A DNA stretch of 64,000 nucleotides, taken from NCBI GenBank assembly GCA_964057225.1, contig OZ059898.1, forward strand, positions 16,120,001-16,184,000, read 5' to 3'. This document shows, one piece after another, positions 24,675 through 38,955 of this stretch. The stretch's first letter is position 1. Every line of letters starts with the position of its first letter. Both the position numbers and the translations under genes were made by a program. Source of the DNA: Auanema rhodensis (lineage: Eukaryota > Animalia > Nematoda). A model generated the notes under the pieces. That model worked only from the letters and a program-made list of their open reading frames with translations. It did not search any database and was not told the origin of the DNA.

Positions 24675-26823
24675 CGCTATTTTATCATAACTAAAAAATA
24701 AGTAAAAATAATTTTAAAAATTTTAATATTTTTTAAAAATAGAAGAAGATAATTTAGAAAACATCATAAAGAAATAGAAATGATTATTTTTAAAAATCGG
24801 TGATTGAATTTTTAAAAAAAATTATTTGTAAATACATAGAAGTAAAATCCTGATTTCAAATGGAAGAGCAAATAATGAAAACCAAATTTTTTATTGTTTT
24901 AATGTTATAACTTTGTTTCTAAATGATTTGACTGCAGATCATCATTCTGATGTTCGAGACGTCAACCAACTTGACGATGCGATGATGTTGATGACGATCA
25001 TGATGACTATATATATATGATCATCTTACAATGTCACCGTATGTCTGATTCTTACTCTTATCGTCGTTACATTGTTGAGAACAGTGCTCCAGATGAAACG
25101 GAATACAAACGGATTACTGTAATTGGTCACGTTTGACAACAAGTAATTGACATGGATTGAAGGCAATTTTGCAGCACTCTCGTTGGCTATCTATCTCAAA
25201 TTACAATTTCTTGTCAGTCTGTTTCTCAGTTATAAGAGTAGGAAAACTGGAATATTTTGTTTTTGATTTCAACTATCAAAACCTATTTCTAAGTCAATAT
25301 TATCTTAAAAAAAGAAGAGAAAAAAGCAAAATTTGTAAGAAGGAATTTAATTTTTCAGAAAATCATGGCGAAGTACAAAATTTTTTTTCGAATAAATGGC
25401 GATTATATGGGGTTTTTTAAAAGTAAAACAAACAACAGAGTTAACTGTCAACGAGACAAATGAGTAAAAGTATGTAATTTCAAATACATGTATACTATAT
25501 AGTAGGTGTGACTAAAAATGGAATAAGCAAATTACCTATAGCATTTATATTTTCTTGTGAGAGAGGCCTTGTTGAAGAAAAAAACAACAAGAAAGAAAAC
25601 GAATGTAAAAATAATTTTTGATCGGAAGTTCAAAAAACTGACAGGAAACGTAAAACCTGTGTTAGTGAACTTTGAGAAAAGAAACAGTTATTTGCAGTAA
25701 TTCTGACGGAACTAAAAAAAATAAAAGGATCTGGAGGGGGAATCTGATAAGCGACAAAAAATAAAAAAGTAAGGTGGTTACTATAAAGAATTATTACTTT
25801 ACAGGCTTTCGAAGAGAGATTGTTAACTGAGTATATCAGCGTAATGAAGAGATCATACACACTTAAATTCATAAACGTTCATCGTAGATTGAGAAATTGT
25901 TGCAATCGTATAGGTAAATGACTGTTAAGAGAAGGATAGCGATATGAAATATTCATCTTTTGCCGTTTCTCTTTCGCTTGCAAAAGGATCTCGTCAGACA
26001 GCAGTACCTGTTGCAATATTCTTTGAATCTGGTGGCATCATATAATGTCTTAAAGAAGATAAAGAGGAAGAACTGATTTTAAGAGGGATAAGCTATGGAA
26101 AACAGCTAACGGAATGAAAAAAACTGTTTGGAGCGTGTAGGATGAAAGGCAGAGAAAAATGTAAGGAAGAACATGGACAACGCCAGAGAGAAAAGGGAGA
26201 TAGTGAGAAAGACTTGCAGCCAGAGATAGAGTTAGAGAGACAACCCAGCGAGAAAATGAAAACCCATCTTAGATTCCGGTAGTCGGCTTGAACCTTTTGG
26301 ACAGTTACGTTCACTCTCATGAGAAGACGTCAAAAGAAATCTTATGAAGAACAAGACGGGGCGGCGGAAGGGGTGTTCTTCATGTTTCTTTCATTTCTTT
26401 GTTTCTCTACCTCTCTATCTTGCAATCCATAAATTGTCAATCTCTAACCCACCCCTCTCTTTTTTTTGTCTTTTCTAATTTGATCATGAAGACATAAAAA
26501 GGAAGAAAACGATCTCAAGTTTTAGTCTGATCGTTGGCTATACTTTTAACATATTGACCAATTGACCATCACCGAAGAGCTCTAAAAAGAACAATTAAAA
26601 TCACAAAATTATTTGATTGATTGTCTAATTATGAGTATTTATTTCTATTTCAATTATAATCTTGGAGATTGTACAGATTATAGATAACAAATATACAAAG
26701 TGTCCATAAAAATGACGAATTGAACGTGGGTCAGATAAAAGGTTCAGAAGTTCGACAGATATAGGTTTAGAAGAATAAAAAAATTCAATCAATAATTTGT
26801 AAATTTTAATATAGAATATCATC

Positions 26824-26860
<37 letters not shown>

Positions 26861-27094
26861 CTTTAAAAGGCTTAGTTATAGTATTATATATCAAGAGAAA
26901 TATTAAATAATAATTTGCAGAAATGATAAAACGTTTTATTGGAGGGAGTATAACGGAACTCAAATCGATAGTTTGCAAAACAATTTAGGATGCAAATGTT
27001 TATTTCTCTCCTGAACTGTTTATAACACAAAGTTCAATCAACAGTTCAGGTGGTTCCAACTTAACACAAATTTTATATTTCACATTTTTTGTCT

Positions 27095-29743
27095 TTAAGT
27101 ATTACGCCATGAAAGTTTACATGATGTTTTATTTCTCCATTTTCTAACACAGTCGTCTTGAGACGTTTAGGATGATCTGGCTCTAACTGTCCTGTTGCAC
27201 CTGTATGCATATTATAATATGATCACTACTTGATTTTAATAAAATTCAACCTTCTAAGTCAGCACATAACTCTTCGGAGTGATGTGATTTACGTAGAGCA
27301 CAGAGATGCTCCATTTTACATTTCCGATCGCATGGTGGATAATCGGTTCTTCGGTAAAAGTTTCTAGAATGAATCAACTTTATTATAAATTGCTTATGTA
27401 AATAGAGTTTACTTCAAAAATTTTGCAAATAGAGAATCATCTATTTTCATCCTATTGATAAGATTATGCCATTCGCTTGGAATGTTTCCAGACAGTCCAT
27501 ATTCCTAATTAACTATGTTATTTTTCTAAGTCATAGAAGTTTCCTACCTGAACAACTGAAGCATAGAGAGTTGTCCAAACCGGATTCATTGGTGGTAAAT
27601 TATTAGCAGTTAAGTTAAACATATACTCTTCCCAGTCAATTACTCTCTTAAGCCATATAAGTAAGAATACAATGTCATGCTACATACATAAGTGGATCCT
27701 TCATAGTGCCCATCAACAGTATATATTCTATATGCAGGGTTGTATCGAGAATATGGTGTAACACTTGGTGCACTAAACAAAGCATTACTTTTATGTTTTA
27801 AATTGTTTTCAATCAAGAAAAACTTCGAAAATTGAAGTTTATAAATAATATGATTTACATATATCTAATTCCTTATTTCAAATTTTTCTAGTAAAATCAG
27901 TTATTTTATACTAATTAAATTAATGTTTAACTAAACCTATAAACTACATCAACTGGACGACTATTAGCATTATTGGGATTTTCATAAAACATATAAAATT
28001 GCTCTGAATGAACATGACCATAAAACTGTCCAGCTATAATATTTTCATATCTACAAGAAAATTTAGAAATATAGCCAAAGATAATTAGATTTCACCTGTT
28101 TATAGCTCTATAATAATTCAAAGAAAAGCTTTCTAGTCCTTCAGGAGTTCCACCAGGTATATGAGCAATGATGTGAACCTTGAAATAAATATTTCATGCC
28201 AACCTAATAGAGGCTCACTTTATCTCCTGCTTTTTCAGCTTCATCAAGCTGTTTAATAAACCACGACATTGAGCCATCTGGATCAGTTTGATTTACCATC
28301 AAAAATCTATTTTGAATATTTAAAATAATTAGAGTTAGAAAACAACTACAGATTTAGATTATCCCCGTATCCATTGTTCAGAGAAATAAGCCGTAGCCCT
28401 GGGAATAGCTTCACCATATAACATCCATTGCTGTTGTTAAAGAACTTATTGAAAGAAGAAAACTTTTTCTATACTATCGAACGGTGTCAACTTGATCAGA
28501 TGGAATGGAGTCTTTCCAAGAATATGCGATTGTATCATACAGCCAAGACATGTTAAACCGTGCTGGAGTGAAGTGAGGAGCAAAACTAAACATTTTTTAT
28601 CAAAAGTTTGAATGTAATTCCATGATACCTGTCCATTGGAACACCTTCATGATTTCCTACTGCAAAATAGACAGGTGTTCTTGGAAAATGTTTTTTGATT
28701 AAGGCAGAAATATTTCTGATTCTATCAGCATGAGCTTCTTTAGTATAATCCCATAATGCATGTGATTCCAAATCTCCAGTTAATAAAATGTAAGACAACT
28801 ATAAACTGAAACATTGAGAATGAATAGAAAATACAACAAACATCAGTATGCTTCTGAGATATTTGTTGTAACATGTTATCCACAAACCAATAGGGCGCAT
28901 CACATTGTCCTACAGTTCCCCAATAGCCAGCAGGCTCTTTGATTTTGGATTCCGAAACTTCCTAATAGCTGTGATTGCACATGTAACTATGCAGCAACTT
29001 ACGTCTGGATCATTGTTTGGTCTACAACATAGAGCCATAGTATTGGAGCATTGAGCTTCTGCTCCAACAACATAATCTCTATCCATATGAATATCAGTTA
29101 AGTGAAGTACTTTGAAAGTTGGTTTTCCAGACTGCAACATGTTTTTAGATAATTTAAGTCATAATTATCACACCTTGATAATAGTCTTAGGGATAAGACT
29201 TGGCTTATTACCTGGTAATGGTAAAATCCATGTCACATTCAATGGATCAAAAAACTTAATATAGCGTTATAAGTTAATAATTTTTGGAAATTAAACTAAC
29301 TTTTCCACAGTCATCTATAACTAAAGAACAAACTTCTTTAGGAGTGACTAGGCATTTTTCTAGAACATATTCAACTTCATCCTATAATTAATTTAAATGC
29401 CCAAGAATATAGAAATCCCAAACTTTATAATTAGATAAAGCAGCCTTACAAATATAATTACTTTCCACATTGAATTGCACACATATATAAGCTAGAAGAT
29501 CTCCCACACAATCTACAGCATTCTAAACATGGTTGTACCCAATTCACATATCAATGGTATTGAAACACCTCGCCCCATTTTCTTTCCAATAAATTAACCA
29601 TCAAACGACATTGTAGGCATTCCTCTGATACTGCGTTTCCTAAACACTTTTCAGCATTTGAAAAAAGCTAATAACAAACCATTTGGAATAGAATGACCAG
29701 ATACCAACACAAGAACTGGTAAGAACCAAAAGCTTAAACTCAT
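27095..29743 (-). CDS. Acid sphingomyelinase (SMPD1/ASM family): signal peptide, saposin domain and metallophosphoesterase domain
   Basis: About 16 exons. Signal peptide MSLSFWFLPVLVL; saposin cysteines; metal ligands LTDIH, TGD, GNHE, AHIP, GHVH; PSVTPY..NPAYRIY. The specific asm paralog was not assigned. Confidence 0.95.
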
Positions 29744-29785
29744 AATTAACTGCTCTCTACTAAAGCTGTCTTTATTTGAATAGGT

Positions 29786-29795
29786 TCTTATCAGT
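29786..29795 (-). promoter_or_regulatory. Extended GATA (ELT-2-type ACTGATAAGA) site just upstream of the ASM gene
   Basis: tcttatcagt on +, about 43 bp upstream of the ATG; further TGATAA sites near 30011, 30080, 30199 and 30426. Confidence 0.5.
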
Positions 29796-30729
29796 TTTAT
29801 GACACTCCGGCATATTTATTGATCTATAACCATAATATTTACCTAATTTCCCGAAAGAATTTTAGATAATAAGCTTGCTTCATTCAATAACCTCTATCTA
29901 CATGTCCAATTTTTTGGCATTATTTTTTTCCTATTTTTCATTTGATTCTAGAGGTATTTCAATTCTAGATTATCAACTTTCTTATGCTAGTTTCTATATC
30001 ATAACAGCAATTATCAATCGTAGTACCAAAGTCAACTTCAATTGTACGTACGTATAAGATTTTTTTCGTTTGTTCCATTCTTATCATAACGAACAGCAAT
30101 CCTGGAAAGACCTTGACACAAGCCATTCTATATTTTAGCCGATAAATGAACTATTTACTTTCATTGAAAACTTTCTTTTTACCGTCGATTCTATCATGTT
30201 TATCAAACTGCTCTAATATAATTTCATAGTTGTTTGAAAATTAGACGTGTCTTCCTATCCGCCCTTTACTTCATTGTTTAATGTTTCAAATTGTAGCAGT
30301 TTGGGTCAGTTTTACAATTCTCAGTGCAAGTATATTGTAAAGCATTTTTTCATTTTCCAGGAATGATGTATTGACTTAATTCTATAATATTTTCAATGCG
30401 AAACGTGTGAATTGATATTACATTCCTTATCAGTGTTTCAATCTTGTTAGGCAACATAATTCTTTTTCAAGATACAATGTTTGCTCTTTCAGCTTTGATT
30501 TTATATTTTTTTCTTCAAAATTTTCATAATATTAGTACATTTACTAAAAGTTAATTTATTTCTTTTCACCTAATTTGACCCACAAATTTTTCTTACTGTA
30601 TGAGAATTGTACGTAGTGATTCAAAATTCTCTTGGTACACGTTTTTTAACATTACATCTTTCATGATAACCTAGATTTCTTTCAACAATTTCTCTAGCTA
30701 AACTATCGAAACTTATATTTTTAGACATA

Positions 30730-31775
<1,046 letters not shown>

Positions 31776-32055
31776 GAAAAAAAATAATATTTATCTTTTT
31801 GATGTTCCATTGCATCAGATTGTAAGATTTTCACTTTGAGATCGTAATCTGTTTTTTGTTTTCTGTTTTCTAATAAAATATGCGTTTATTTTATATTCTT
31901 TCATGTAGTTTACACTAGTTTGGTCATTTACCCCGTGTTACCTTTCGTCCTGCCTTGATCTCTGTGTAGTTTCATCAAATTCTACCTCCTCAAATCGATT
32001 GGTTTCTGTATAGGTAGAATCGTTGGGCCTTTTGTTACTTGTTTTGGCTCTCACG

Positions 32056-35000
32056 ATGTTCCGACCTCTGAGTCTTTCTTTAAGAAACTGTAGACCAAAT
32101 GGTGGAGGTTTGAGTATTAATTATATTTGTTTAACTTTCCCTCTAATAATCCTGTGTCTGAGTTCCTAAAGTCTAATGTACTCTATCTGTTATTGTTCAT
32201 TAATTGAGAAAGAAAAATGACCCATGATCCGTGGGTTTAAATTATCACGATCACTTGTTGACGTTTAACAGTGAAGTAGTGAAGTAGTGAGCAGACAATT
32301 GATGACGGATCGCCAGTTTTTTTTTTTGTCCCTCTGTCTAACATTTAAGATTTTTTTTACCTTTTTACTGATAAGCTTCTGACAGCTATTCCTTATTCAT
32401 TTTATTTCCATCTTGTAATTAGTCAGTTAGTACTATATTTTTTCTTGTTACTAGTATTCTCTGAAAAACCTTTTTTTCAGGGTTCACTAGAAAATTTCAG
32501 AGTGCTCGATCTCATTCTAGAGCATTCCGGTTAGTGAAACGTCCGCTCTGTTTAACAGGTATACTATCAAAATAATCTGATTACTAGATAGGTTTTACAG
32601 CTCCTCGTGTCCTCAATTTAAATACTTTTAATTCACCGTCGTTACGATATTACACGATGGCTACCTGTGCCGCTCCTGCTAAAGAAAAATATGAGCGCCT
32701 CCCAGACTTTGCTCGTCCAACCCATTATAATGTAAAGCTTTGTCCTGATTTGTCGAAGTAAGAGGTGTCATCGATGACTTAGCATTCACTGAAACTTATA
32801 GATTTACTTTTGATGGTTTGATTAATATTGATGTTAATGTGATTAAGCCTACAAATATCTTGAAGTTGCATGCCCAAGAATTACAAATTTCTAGCGCATC
32901 TGTTCAACTTGCTGATCAATCTGGTAATATTAATTTCAAATGTATGAGCAATTAAATGATTCAGTTCTTAACAACTTGCAACATACGTATGACGAGAAGT
33001 TCCAGATTCTTACTGTAAATCTCCCCAATGAGATTGCTTCTCAACAAGTTTGTTAATATTTACAAAAAATAGTCCATATAGTCATTTATCAGATTAAACT
33101 TACGATTGATTTTGTTGGAGAACTCAATGATAAAATGAGAGGATTCTATAGAAGTTCCTACAAAAACGGTGAAGGAGAAAACAAATTCTTAGCTTCCACT
33201 CAATTCGAGGTTCTTTCCCGTTTCCATGTTGCCCTCATAATTTGTTTTACAGTCAACCTATGCTCGCTACTCTTTCCCATGTTGGGACGAACCTATTTAC
33301 AAGGCTACCTTTGATGTGACCTTGGTTGTTGATAAAGAACATACAGCTTTGTCCAATATGGTACATAAATATACCAAAACTATTAATTACGATTATTGAA
33401 GGATGTCAAATCCGAGAAGGAAAGCCCATGTGGAAAAAAAAAGATAGTTGAATTCAACACTTCGCCAATAATGTCAACATATCTTGTTGCTTTTGCTGTG
33501 GGGGAGCTCGAATACATTGAGGTGATTACAAAATGGGTGTGAATATGAAACATATTGTTATAGAGCAAAACCAAAAGTGGAACCGTCATGAGGGTTTACA
33601 CTGTTCCTGGAAAGAAGGATCACGGAGAATTCGCTTTAGAACTCTCGACTAAGTATCTAAATTTATAATTTTATTTAACATTAATGATATTATTCATAGG
33701 GCTATTGATTGGTACAATGAATGGTTTGATATTCCATATCCACTTCCAAAATGTGATCTGATCGCTATCCCAGATTTCAGCATGGGTAAACAAGCGGGGA
33801 TACTCGAATTTTTGAAATGAGTATGTTTCAGGAGCTATGGAGAATTGGGGTCTCGTAACATACCGTGAGGTCGCTCTTCTTTTCGACGCTAATAAGTCTT
33901 CTACTAGACAAAAGGCTAGAATTGCTCTTATTATTGCTCACGAGTTAGCTCATCTTTGGTTTGGAGATCTTGTCACCATGGTATGCTCTGAGATTTATTT
34001 ACATTTTATATGCTTTCTTGAAGAAATGGTGGACTGATCTATGGCTGAAGGAAGGATTCGCTTCTTTCATGGAGTATATGTTTGTTGGATATAATTATGA
34101 TGAGTTCAAAATTTGGTTGTACTTCTTAAATGATGAACTTGCCCAAGGATTCCAACTAGATGCTTTGAGAAGTTCCCATCCCATTGAAGTTAGTGGTGAA
34201 ATGTGATCATAGTTTTATATGTTTTACCAGGTTGAAATCGATGATCCCAATGAGTTGGACGAAATCTACGACTCTATCACTTATGCCAAATCCAATTCTG
34301 TCAATAGAATGCTCTGCTATTACTTAGGAGAAGAAACCTTCCAAAAGGGTCTTCGTCACTATCTTAAGAAGTATCAATACGGAAATGCCGTAACGGTGGA
34401 TTTATGGAACTCTTTAAGTGAGGCTTCCGGCCAGGTTGAAATGACCAGATTATTCTTGTCATATTTCATATTTTAGGATGTAGCTAGTTTGATGTCTGGA
34501 TGGACAAAGCAAATGGGTTTCCCACTTGTAACATGTACTCAATCCCAAAATGGCTCCGACCGTGTTTTGAAACTCAAACAAAAGAGATTCCTTGCTGATG
34601 GCGGAGACGATTGTGCTAATCAGTTGTGGCAGGTAACAATATGATGCTTTTATTAATTAGTGAATTCATATTATCAGGTTCCTATTACTGTGTCAGTAGG
34701 ATCCAATCCATCTGGAGTCAAAGCAAGCTTTCTTCTCAAGGAAAGAGAACAAGAATTCGTTATAAAGGATGTACCTGCTGGTGAATGGTTGAAAGTTTGT
34801 TATTTTTCTAATTTCTCGGTTTAATGCAATTTTTAAGTTGAACGCCGGAACTACTGGGTTCTACAGAGTCGAGTATGATGAAGAATCTTTCAAGACTCTT
34901 CTGGCTGCTATTGCAAGCGGACAAATGCCTGTTTTGGATCGTTTCGGAATTACCAACGATCTCTTCGCTCTTGTTAGAGCCGGAAGAGCTCCTGCTTCTC

Positions 35001-36132
35001 AGTTCTTATCTCTACTTGAAGCATCTGTCAATGAAGAAGAAAATGTTGTTTGGGGAGCTTTGGATGCCGGAATTTCTGCTTTGAATAATGTCATAATGCA
35101 TGCTGATACCGACGGAAGTCTCAAAAAACGGTATATAATACATTAGGTAACTACAAAATCTTCATATTTTCAGCCTTGACAACTTCATTTCTAAAACCAT
35201 TGCTCCAGTTGGGGAACGAGTTGGATGGGAGCCAAAACCCGGAGAAGGTCGAACATATATGGTTTAAATAATAATGTTTATGTTTCAGATTCTCAAAGAT
35301 CACTTATGCGTTCAGTTATTCACGGACGTTTATCTAAGGCTGGACATCAACCCACAATTCTCAAGATGAAATCACTCTTCGACGAGCATTTTCATCAAAA
35401 AAAAGAACTTCACCCTGACCTTCGTTTAGCGGTTTGGCTACCAATTTGTTTTGAATTTGTCTTTTTTCCGTTATAGATCTACGGATCTGTAGCCCGCAAT
35501 TATGGAGAAGAAGCTTTCAATCAACTTCTTCAAATTTACGAAACTGTCGGATTTGGAGAAGTTGAAAGACAAGCTCTGGTTGCTCTTGCTCAAACACCTT
35601 CAATTCCCCTTCTTCAAAACTTATATAATTACGGTATCGTAGAGGTGAGTAGACGGGATTCTTGCTGTTGATTCATAAATGTTATACAGGGTAAAGTCAG
35701 ATCTCAAGACTTAATGATGTTGATGGTTGGTCCAAGTGGAAGTAAACCAGGCCAAGAATTCCTCTGGCCTTATTTCAAAGAAAATGTCAAACTCTTGATT
35801 GACAAATTCGGAGGAGCAAATGCCAGTTTATTCCAGGTTCTTAGTCTCGAACATACAATTATTTAAAAAATATGTTTCAGCATTGTTTCAAGCTTTCTGC
35901 CGACAGTTACTGTACCGAAGAAGTTGCTAAAGATGTAGAAGGCTTTTTCTGCACTTGTCTAGACGCAAGCTCGGTCAGAATTTTAGATAGACCTATCAGA
36001 CAGGTAAAAAACATATTTGTCTAAATAAGAAATTCAATGTTGCAGGTTACTGAATCTATTCGTTTGAATCGCTCTCTTCTAATGAAGAACTCACCTGTTG
36101 TTGACGAGTTCTTGAAGACGAAAAATTTTTAA
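32056..36132 (+). CDS. pam-1: Puromycin-sensitive aminopeptidase (M1 family): long isoform from ATG 32056, short isoform from ATG 32657
   Basis: 22 exons. ERLP start, [26 protein letters not shown]...WLKEGFA zinc motif, ERAP-C domain. Confidence 0.95.
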
Positions 36133-36248
36133 TTCCTTTCAGCGTACACCAACACATTAATTTCTGTCAATAACTTTATTGTAATAACTTTATTTTCTGC
36201 ATAAAGTAATTTCTTGAACAATTTATGAAATTTATGAACTAATGTGAC

Positions 36249-36778
36249 TTAATTTTTCTCTTCGCTTGGATCGGAGTTGATACCTGAATTTTTTCGAATA
36301 TTCAATGCATATTATCCAAATACCTAACCTTTAAAACATTCTGTGCGCGTGACGCATTCCATAAAAGCCATCATCTCTTCCCCACATCTGCCATTCTGCA
36401 TTTCTTCCTGTGTAGCAACATTCTGGCAATTTATAGCCTCTCTGCGATCATAATTCAAAGTTTGTAGAATAATATTAACGGTACCTAAAACTCCATCCAC
36501 AAGGGCTTGCAACCATATGTCCTACACAGTGGCATTCGAAATTCATAGATCCATCTGGCTTAGTTGGGCCAGGATTGTTACTTCGATAAACTTCCGTAGG
36601 GTCGGTATCAGCTAGCGTTTGTATGTAGTCATCACTAATATCGCTCCAAAATTCTGCTGGGGTCACATAATTTATCTAAAGAACTAAACTGAGTAGTCAA
36701 AATAATGAGATCCTCAAATACACTATGCCTCTCAGAAAATATAGGTGGTGACGAAGATGAAGTTGTATCTGAAGACAT
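36249..36778 (-). CDS. MIA40/CHCHD4-like oxidoreductase paralog with CHC in place of CPC
   Basis: 4 exons. DGSMNFECHCVGHMVASPCGWSF|REAINC...CGEEMMAFMEC gives CxC plus twin CX9C. Confidence 0.85.
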
Positions 36779-36981
36779 AACTGTACTATTAGCATTATTA
36801 AAGATATGTTCTGTCTGCTTAGACTACAGCTAATTTAAAGGTCTGTGTTATCTACTTCCTGCCACGATGTTTTCATAATTTCCTTCATGAATTTTGGTTG
36901 TGGAATATTTCTAATATTTTTAATTTAATTTAATATTTTGATATTTGGTCAAGCTTATTTTTTTTTTTTAGAATATTCTAG

Positions 36982-37909
36982 ATGCCTCGTTCCAGGAGAG
37001 ATAAGGATGGTAAGTGTAGTACAGCAGATTTTACTTGAACTTTCTTAATTTCAGTTTCTTTGACCAAGGTCAAGAAGAAGACTAAAGCAACAAAAGAGAG
37101 TTTAATTAAAGAGGTATGCTTAATAGTTAAAGTTTGTTAGATATGCATTTATAACCTAATGCATTTCAGGTTAGAAAATCTGTCGATTCTTATTCTGATG
37201 TTTACGTTTTCACTATTGAAAATTTGCGTAGTACCCTATTCACTGATGTAAGAGTAAACTAATCGATATTCAGTATGATTATTTTTCAGATCAGACAGAA
37301 GTTGAAGGCTTCTTCTCGGTTTTTCCTTGGCAGGAATAATGTTATGGCAGTTGCTCTTGGCAGGGACTCAAATACCGAGTGCGCTGAGAAACTACACAAA
37401 GTACGGCCTCGTCTATTATTTTTGCATAACATAATCAACTTTCAGATTAGTGAGCAATTAAAAGGCAATTGTGGATTGATGTTCACAAACTTACCTAAAG
37501 AAGAAGTTATCAAGTATGTAGAAAATTAATTTTCTCTTATGTGAATGTGCTTAGATTTTTTGAACAAGTAAAAGAAGCTGATTATGCTCGTGCTGGTGAA
37601 ATCGCTACCCAAGATGTTATCATTCCTGAAGGGCCTCTTCCACAATTTGCCTTTTCTATTGAACCTCAGTTAAGAAAGCTTGGATTGCCAACTCAGTTAG
37701 TAAAGGGAGCTATAGCTTTGTATCAAGATTTCGAAGTTTGTAAGGAAGGTAGCGCTATCAGTGTTGAAAGTGCAAAGGTAGGAAATACATTAACTTTATA
37801 TTTATGAAACTTTTTCCAGATTCTTAAAATGTTTGAGCGTAAATTGGCATTTTTCCAAGTAAAGCTGAATTCACACTGGTCGAAGTCAACTGGATTTGAG
37901 TCTTTGTAG
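36982..37909 (+). CDS. Ribosome assembly factor MRT4/MRTO4
   Basis: MPRSRRDKDVSLTKVKKK, SRFFLGRNNVMAVALG, CGLMFTN, DYARAG, IEPQLRKLGLPT; 7 exons. Confidence 0.93.
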
Positions 37910-38099
37910 AGTTATCGCTACCTCGTTGTTATTGTTTGTTGTTGTTGTTAAGATTATTATGGTGCAGTTTCCAATTGTTTAAGTTTTTTTATTGCAACAA
38001 AGTTTTTAAAATACACTGTTTAATAATGTTTCTGATCGTCTTCGTCCAGCTACTTATAGTTTTTTCTGGGTAAAATTAAAGCTAGATAGTTTAATTTAG

Positions 38100-38664
38100 A
38101 TGTTATTACGCCGTATTGGGTTAGTGGCTACGAGAAGATTAGCTTCGAAAGAAGCTGTTGAACCTCAGTTTAGTAAAAGCGCTGCTTTCATGGTATCTTT
38201 CGAGTCATTTTCTTGTTCGTCAGTTGTGTTTAGGGTAAAAAACGAGTTATTCATGGGCCTAGTGCTACCTTCGATTATTATACCACGGATGAATTTGCTA
38301 ACAAAAAAATATTATCAGCTCTTCTGAGTTTAACGGCACTTGTCGCATATTTTGGTTGGATCAGGTTCGATTAAGCTTGGGTATGAGAACATAAATTTGA
38401 GTTTATCAGAGAACCATCTGATTTGGATGATGTTTGGAGTACTCCACCTCATATATTAACTGCTAATTTAGAGCGAAAGATGTTAAGAAATCAGATCAAA
38501 GATGTTGTAAATCTGCTTTGAAACTATATATATCAATTTTTTAGGCTCAAGATAAAGGCCAAAATACTGAATTCTTACAAGCCCAACTTGAATACGTAGA
38601 TGTCAAGGAGGAAGCCCTGAGAATACAGTTCCAGGACAAAACCAAAAAGATTGGTTCTGTATAA
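38100..38664 (+). CDS. Small mitochondrial single-TM protein, CCSMST1/UQCC4-like
   Basis: Presequence MLLRRIGLVATRRLAS; TM ILSALLSLTALVAYFGWI followed by REPSDLDD, similar to the family YF..LREE.D.D motif; 4 exons. Confidence 0.6.
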
Positions 38665-38955
38665 TTTTTTTAGTTTTAGATAATTGTAGTTTATTTATTA
38701 ATAAAATTTTATATTTTCAATACTCTTATTATTATATGGGATCTGATTCTATTAATGGAAACATGAATGTTGACAATTTCATTTTTTTTGTTTCTTTGCT
38801 TTCTCATTTCTTTTCAAATCAAAAAAATCAAAAACACATGAGAGAAGGTATACATTTATTTTGATAGTATTGGAATGTATCATTTCTAAGTGCTTTACAA
38901 TACAAATTAAACCAAATATAAAACCTTGCAAACTAATAGATAAAACATTTCTAGA

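Follow-up and report, generated by a model that had tools for sequence, protein, structure and literature searches.

A two-start PAM-1 gene behind AK2 in Auanema rhodensis as a candidate source of cytosolic and mitochondrial puromycin-sensitive aminopeptidase

Puromycin-sensitive aminopeptidase (PSA) is regarded as an enzyme of the cytosol; it acts in the C. elegans zygote and helps turn over proteins prone to aggregation. For C. elegans pam-1, a long and a short isoform are listed, and the initiator of human NPEPPS is uncertain, being either Met-1 or Met-46. Here, we analyzed the PAM-1/PSA gene of the nematode Auanema rhodensis and the AK2 gene preceding it, within a window of 64,000 nt (contig OZ059898.1, positions 16,120,001 to 16,184,000, forward strand). 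Some described systems come close to one or another feature of this locus: (i) yeast Ape2, a PSA-like M1 enzyme, was among the multi-localisation candidates given antibodies in a mitochondrial proteome study (PMC5561175); (ii) in C. elegans mpk-1a/b, the first exon is isoform-specific and the long first intron holds a second promoter (PMC7812387), and binding of transcription factors in first introns is likewise described (PMC3874175); and (iii) the isoleucyl-tRNA synthetase of T. brucei is dually targeted by alternative trans-splicing (PMC3273800). Among the papers searched, we found none that links PSA/NPEPPS to a mitochondrial presequence, reports a mitochondrial PSA isoform in animals, localises the long form, or puts the two-start design to the test in animals, and none that places pam-1 in an operon.

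The locus is a two-gene unit on one strand (+), in which AK2 is followed by a PAM-1/PSA orthologue with two in-frame starts. Our preferred reading, to which we assign a probability of about 0.5, is that the long PAM-1 form derives from an AK2 polycistron and the short form from intron 1 of pam-1. The mRNAs containing exon 1 would begin at a 3' splice acceptor 125 nt past the AK2 poly(A) site, most likely after excision from an AK2-PAM-1 polycistronic precursor by spliced-leader (SL) trans-splicing, and would encode a 62-residue basic, acid-free leader for targeting to the mitochondrial matrix. The short cytosolic enzyme would start at the second in-frame start codon (AUG2, 32657), on transcripts most likely initiated within intron 1, which is conserved and 373 nt long; trans-splicing of these at the exon 2 acceptor would leave a 134-nt 5' leader without an AUG.

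The 5' part of pam-1 comprises three exons. Exon 1 (32014..32107) has a 42-nt 5' untranslated region (UTR), the first start codon (AUG1) at 32056, and 17 codons plus 1 nt, and is followed by GT. Intron 1 (32108..32480), 373 nt in length and ending in TTTTTTTCAG, is where an internal promoter or enhancer may lie. Exon 2 (32481..32558, 78 nt) encodes the middle of the extension and contains no ATG, and exon 3 (32601..32757) encodes the end of the extension (…SLRYYT) and contains AUG2, where the conserved enzyme starts; both are defined by RNA joints and by translation. Exon-by-exon translation gives 62 residues in frame ahead of the second ATG at 32657. An earlier, sequence-only reading of this DNA had placed the exons, the AK2 AATAAA, the acceptor AG, and the introns, and had given the 62-residue peptide, all of which match the sequence and translations; its description of intron 1 as about eightfold longer than the others likewise holds, at 373 nt versus 41-45 nt for the other PAM-1 introns listed from RNA contigs (42 nt in the case of intron 2).

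RNA directly establishes the exon structure with its junctions, the poly(A) site, and the 5' boundary at the AG. It was sampled as assembled contigs of four runs (X1-X4) from one study, which held ∼60% of the region's sampled words; the contigs are spliced and therefore represent RNA. All AK2 and PAM-1 joints are GT..AG, apart from one GC..AG intron in AK2. The junction 32107^32481, on which the sequence-only reading depended, was found in the main PAM-1 contigs of X1 and X2 (two of the four runs), and 32558^32601 and 32757^32803 were each found in X1-X4. The AK2 contigs end at 31885-31888, one of them with a poly(A) tail (an X1 contig that continues into AAAAAAAAA). The main PAM-1 contig of X2 has its 5' end at 32012, that is, at the acceptor AG followed by exon 1, and in X1, depth arithmetic implies a separate, unlisted unitig over 32012-32107 with the same start base. 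This contig boundary at the AG in two runs fits several upstream sequences (leader variants or precursor) clipped as assembly tips. The implied exon 1 unitig of X1 is ∼36x deep, and the mRNA body 141x; reduced coverage toward 5' ends could by itself account for this, and we gave the difference no weight.

At the exon 2 acceptor, the four runs differ. The X4 contig begins at the AG plus exon 2; the main X3 contig covers 32197-32554 unbroken, entering exon 2 from within intron 1; and the remaining three runs have low-depth unspliced contigs over 32079-32442. The contigs are therefore heterogeneous at this acceptor, but unspliced precursor or branching of the assembly graph could account for it. 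Separately, the X3 contig has two additional T residues in the intron 1 poly-T run at 32316, representing a length polymorphism or an assembly slip.

The origin of the long mRNA was assessed from the sequence between the two genes. A U-rich spacer (31889..32013, 125 nt, +), which we take as a putative intercistronic region, runs from the AK2 poly(A) site to the PAM-1 acceptor …TGTATAG|G. The acceptor AG at 32012-32013 lies 125 nt past the poly(A) site at ∼31888, which fits the spacing of about 100 nt typical of SL2 operons, in agreement with the operon-like spacing first read from the sequence. The ATAG|GT acceptor is conserved in Auanema sp. JU1783, and P. pacificus has a similar CATAG|GT ahead of its first ATG; in both species pam-1 is directly preceded by a same-strand ADK gene. 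A search of the genome (181 Mb, 112 contigs) for SL genes yielded four SL2 genes above the Rfam cut-off, as well as a large tandem array of SL1 RNA genes (contig C3, ∼6.74-7.10 Mb; copies 252 nt or multiples apart) whose copies score just below the Rfam SL1 gathering score and contain the canonical 22-nt leader. The leader sequences are GGTTTAATTACCCAAGTTTGAG for SL1 and GGTTTTAACCCAGTATCTCAAG / GGTTTAAACCCAGTACTCAAAG for SL2. Since both SL1 and SL2 genes are present, SL2-type operon processing is available to this species. An AK2-pam-1 operon is thus plausible, and it is probably old within clade V; the type of spliced leader on the long mRNA we infer from this setting. As a separate observation, the 10-mer TTTGGTCATT occurs both in the AK2-pam-1 spacer (window 31921-31930) and in the ADK-pam-1 spacer of P. 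pacificus (L015 7690-7699), where JU1783 has GTGGTC/GTGGTCC at the matching place; this may be chance or a spacer element.

The start of the long mRNA is conserved at the nucleotide level. A stretch comprising 5' UTR and exon 1 aligns between the window (32024-32107) and JU1783 (L013, 7968-8052); within it, positions 32024-32050 of the 5' UTR are identical at 27/27 positions, and in exon 1, residues that are identical keep an identical codon in 11 of 13 cases, versus 47.5% elsewhere in the gene (p = 0.007). RNA structure was rejected as the cause of this conservation, as the fold of 32014-32130 was no better than those of shuffled sequences (z = -0.29). Moreover, an Rfam scan of 31700-32700 gave no match at E <= 1, and a noncoding RNA in the spacer or in intron 1 was rejected.

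A DNA element could account for this conservation, and it would suit an explanation that dispenses with the operon, in which exon 1 is driven by a promoter of its own, in the 125-nt spacer or immediately 5' of it, and is given SL1, the adjacency of AK2 being plain synteny. The long form is annotated in Brugia, where the gene upstream of pam-1 is divergent, and in strongylids, which have no ADK upstream, so a promoter of its own is possible; in addition, no SL2 was seen on the assembled contigs of the four runs. However, the gap between poly(A) site and acceptor is merely 125 nt and is poorly conserved with JU1783, the same-strand adjacency persists between the distant genera Auanema and Pristionchus, as operons preserve, and the genome contains SL2 genes. 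We therefore consider an independent, SL1-spliced exon 1 promoter unlikely, although it deserves a hearing.

The AK2 operon and the isoform are nevertheless separable. Among the species without ADK upstream of pam-1 (A. ceylanicum, T. colubriformis, C. bovis, Mesorhabditis, Diploscapter, Steinernema, and Brugia), several still encode the leader, and the combination of a short first exon, a long intron 1, a basic leader, and an internal Met occurs without upstream ADK in strongylids, Brugia, and Steinernema; therefore, the AK2 operon does not create the isoform choice. It rather appears, from these gene neighborhoods, to be a lineage-specific carrier that supplies the upstream transcript and not the cause of the isoform. 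Of the idea that the isoform is coupled to the operon, the long mRNA, the spacing, and the adjacency in JU1783 and Pristionchus thus survive, whereas an origin of the isoform in the AK2 operon does not. In C. bovis, a cytidine deaminase gene lies 135 nt upstream of pam-1. A Caenorhabditis Logan RNA contig (L022 1-760) carries a cytidine-deaminase-like open reading frame (ORF) at 3-503 and then pam-1 on one spliced contig; here, an AATAAA lies ∼10 nt before a TTTTTTTCAG acceptor and the pam-1 ATG lies 1 nt past it, leaving almost no intercistronic spacer.

Intron 1 is the candidate origin of the short form. Seven nematodes share a short exon 1 (40-58 coding nt) and a long intron 1 (373-2391 nt), whereas the next intron measures 42-287 nt in the five of these species that have one in the mapped N-terminal part. 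Window positions 32024-32402 align with JU1783 by blastn at 69.5% identity; by contrast, the same comparison gave no high-scoring pair in the AK2 3' UTR, the spacer, the region upstream of AK2, or leader exons 2 and 3. Within intron 1, the conserved blocks are 32237-32266 (27/30) and ∼32350-32395 (25/31). The GATA motif and the repeats that had been noticed in the sequence are indeed present: an extended GATA site, ACTGATAAG, lies at 32367-32375 (TGATAA, 32369-32374) inside a block conserved with JU1783, and GTGAAGTA occurs twice at 32271-32286. A C/D small nucleolar RNA in intron 1 (TGATGA at ∼32301, with CTGA boxes near 32368-32384) was considered and rejected, its C box falling in a gap of the JU1783 alignment.

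None of the seven species has an ATG, in whichever frame, between the start of exon 2 and AUG2, where 7.1 would be expected (P ∼2.5e-4; the species are not fully independent). The ATGs that do occur between the two starts, in the window and in A. ceylanicum, are confined to exon 1. This pattern bears on a simpler explanation, in which one exon 1-containing mRNA yields both proteins and no intronic promoter is needed, the short form arising by leaky scanning past AUG1 or by reinitiation after a 20-codon out-of-frame ORF that starts at 32099. In favor of a single mRNA, the context of AUG2 is the stronger (A at -3 and G at +4, against T at +4 for AUG1), the short ORF from 32099 terminates ahead of AUG2, exon 1 is on the main contig in two of the four runs, and the depletion of ATGs between the starts would suit scanning equally as well as a separate 5' leader. 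On the other hand, the intervening ATGs sit in the very part that transcripts starting at exon 2 would lack; the ATG pattern, as far as sequence can tell, thus appears to match the need of a transcript starting at exon 2, and leaky scanning appears to fit less well. Furthermore, a single mRNA leaves the long, conserved intron 1 of seven species unexplained, and the X3 and X4 contigs break or follow the intron path at the exon 2 acceptor. We regard the one-mRNA explanation as rather improbable, and an intronic promoter, for which the evidence is indirect but consistent, as a reasonable proposal.

The 62-residue extension had been described as acid-free and presequence-like, with an end suited to mitochondrial processing peptidase, and its composition bears this out. 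It is rich in Arg, Ser, and Leu, and contains 12 Lys/Arg, 11 Ser/Thr, and no Asp/Glu, with, by motif matching only, RYY|T (an R-x-Y|T motif) immediately preceding Met-63. Asp and Glu make up ∼12-14% of the mature part, and the chance of 0/62 is ∼2e-4; the lack of acidic residues is therefore beyond chance. The helical moment, an uncalibrated measure, peaks at 0.90 for 11-residue segments (Eisenberg scale). The annotated 945-aa protein of Auanema sp. JU1783, which starts MFRPLSISLRNCRP.GGG…, has a collinear 62-residue extension with 13 Lys/Arg and no Asp/Glu, and, again by motif matching only, RTL|A before its internal Met. Its gene has the same three-exon layout, with coding exons of 52 nt and 78 nt as in the window and an intron 1 of 400 nt. 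Counted by eye, residues 1-18 of the two leaders are identical at 16/18 positions and residues 19-62 at ∼27%; composition is kept and sequence is not, a pattern typical of targeting peptides. Taken together, the leader looks like a matrix-targeting presequence cleaved by mitochondrial processing peptidase, and import and cleavage are what we infer from these features.

Similar extensions are widespread. Using the exon search, and from it N. brasiliensis PAM-1, we collected about a hundred orthologues. Strongylid leaders have 56-58 residues (MLSPLRLARN…; models of 939-941 aa); leaders of ∼22-70 residues are found in Brugia, Ascaris, Steinernema, Pristionchus, Bursaphelenchus, and Aphelenchoides; and insect and mollusc leaders have 60-110 residues. 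Almost all of these leaders are basic with few acidic residues, and after them comes a conserved Met, the start of the short form, of the M-P-E-K-K-P-F-E-R-L-P type in strongylid models and in many from insects and molluscs. In Strongyloides and Parastrongyloides, the models have a different, signal-peptide-like N-terminus with acidic residues, and those compared from Caenorhabditis represent the short form (884 aa in C. bovis, 864 aa in C. angaria, and 885 aa in a Logan contig). When limited to residues 1-100 of the JU1783 protein, a word search matched only that protein itself. The two-start design is thus both old and widely annotated, and the extension as such is not new. As side observations, the odd N-terminus of one strongylid-like orthologue model (P0155) was set aside as a gene-caller artefact with a TTG start; its Logan RNA contig (L023 1-170) begins at a strongylid-type AUG1 (MLSYLRLARN…) whose frame closes at 130-132, out of register with the main ATG at 159-161, reflecting either an assembly indel or a splice variant that makes the leader an upstream ORF.

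That the extension is no mitochondrial presequence, and is instead a basic signal of another kind, such as a nuclear or nucleolar one, or a regulatory tail, or else a leader that is translated but plays no part in targeting, would agree with the lack of a published mitochondrial PSA isoform found in animals, with the uncalibrated amphipathicity measure, and with the acidic, signal-peptide-like N-termini of Strongyloides and Parastrongyloides, but seems to us quite unlikely for an N-terminal, Arg/Ser/Leu-rich segment with 0/62 acidic residues and an R-3-type motif at the mature-enzyme junction in both the window and JU1783, whose composition is kept although residues 19-62 are only ∼27% identical, and whose like recurs across animal phyla.

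Several observations weigh against the two-origin reading of the long and short forms. With regard to the AK2 polycistron, (i) the TGTATAG acceptor is weaker than consensus; (ii) ADK is not upstream of pam-1 in seven of nine other nematodes, so the AK2 link is not general; and (iii) measured from the ADK stop codon, the spacer of P. pacificus is ∼640 nt, a long distance for an SL2 operon. With regard to the transcripts, (iv) no spliced-leader sequence is present on any assembled contig of X1-X4; (v) an X1 contig, 32079-32430, spans the exon 1 donor, so intron 1 RNA may be plain unspliced precursor; and (vi) contigs from a single study cannot give transcript starts or levels.

In keeping with the sequence-only reading, we hypothesize that promoter and leader type choose the compartment. 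In its fullest form, this would mean that location is set by transcript origin: an AK2-pam-1 operon, conserved since the Pristionchus-Auanema split, would give an SL2-spliced mRNA for mitochondrial PSA, co-expressed with mitochondrial AK2, and a GATA-driven promoter in intron 1 would give an SL1-spliced cytosolic mRNA. We offer this version tentatively and lean toward doubting it. If it is true, the invariant 27-nt 5' UTR and the exon 1 codon conservation would mark a control element specific to the long mRNA. That animal phyla share a presequence-like extension and keep an internal start after it suggests that a mitochondrial pool of PSA has been overlooked; such a pool could trim peptides released inside the organelle. 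The locus is a compact, RNA-supported case for testing for such a pool, and it can also serve to ask whether operons and intronic promoters of nematodes split the product of one gene between compartments; if the extension is inert, the locus would be an ordinary alternative 5' end.

The identities of both genes rest on searches with single exons, exons having been joined in scripts solely for the N-terminal translation and the ATG counts. The AK2 coding region, the putative operon's first gene, spans seven exons from ATG to stop (30730..31775, +; stop codon TAG, 31773-31775), and is supported by Pfam (ADK and ADK_lid), by matches to solved structures (AK2 chains, 2e-18; AK3, 2.6e-6), by splice joints present in all four RNA runs, and by collinearity with Auanema sp. 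JU1783. Its 3' UTR (31776..31888, +) contains AATAAA at 31872-31877, with cleavage and polyadenylation at ∼31885-31888. One AK2 intron, 31419-31460, is GC..AG rather than GT..AG; all four runs have its joint (31416->31459 as listed, 3 bases being ambiguous), and splicing restores the conserved NPPK|VPMKDD. The remainder of the PAM-1 coding region (32803..36132, +; stop at ∼36130-36132) consists of many short exons that match, in order, Peptidase_M1_N (PF17900, 2.6e-10), Peptidase_M1 (PF01433, 1.3e-21), and ERAP1_C (PF11838, 3.5e-24). Its frame translations carry GAMEN (GAMENWG), HELAH, and the downstream glutamate of LKEGFA, which make up the HEXXH-X18-E zinc site. Among solved structures, human PSA is the best match (8e-16; aminopeptidase N, 5e-7); the relatives found by exon search include P. 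pacificus 'pam-1' and many 'puromycin-sensitive aminopeptidase' entries; and tblastn with the JU1783 PAM-1 protein extends to 36123. Overall, ∼12 kb is collinear between the window (26476-38677) and a JU1783 stretch (L013, 2600-14601), with the shared order Metallophos (-), ADK (+), pam-1 (+), CHCH (-), and ribosomal L10-like (+). Despite this collinearity, the window is clearly diverged from JU1783.

In comparison with known systems, the locus is one more gene in which an alternative 5' end adds a putative targeting peptide, and its family already has the extension annotated. It shares family and domain order with the PAM-1/PSA orthologues (NPEPPS, Psa) that have an extension, the JU1783 945-aa protein being the closest; it differs from the annotated PSA orthologues in that its long mRNA is backed by RNA junctions and has its 5' end one operon-spacer length behind AK2. 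Yeast Ape2 differs in being the product of a fungal gene without trans-splicing or an operon. Like C. elegans-type SL2 operons, the locus has same-strand neighbors, ∼125 nt from poly(A) site to acceptor, SL2 genes in the genome, and an adjacency retained in distant relatives; the defining SL2, however, was not seen on the contigs of the downstream mRNA, and in a Caenorhabditis species pam-1 lies behind cytidine deaminase rather than ADK. With genes of the mpk-1a/b kind it has in common a first exon that is short and exclusive to one form, conserved noncoding sequence in a long intron 1, and a downstream start for transcripts lacking exon 1, whereas its intronic transcription start and the SL1 at exon 2 are proposals only. 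Finally, as in the T. brucei isoleucyl-tRNA synthetase gene, the choice of trans-splice site would decide whether the presequence-coding part is included; however, trypanosomes use a single leader on one polycistron, while the arrangement proposed here would involve two leader types and two promoters.

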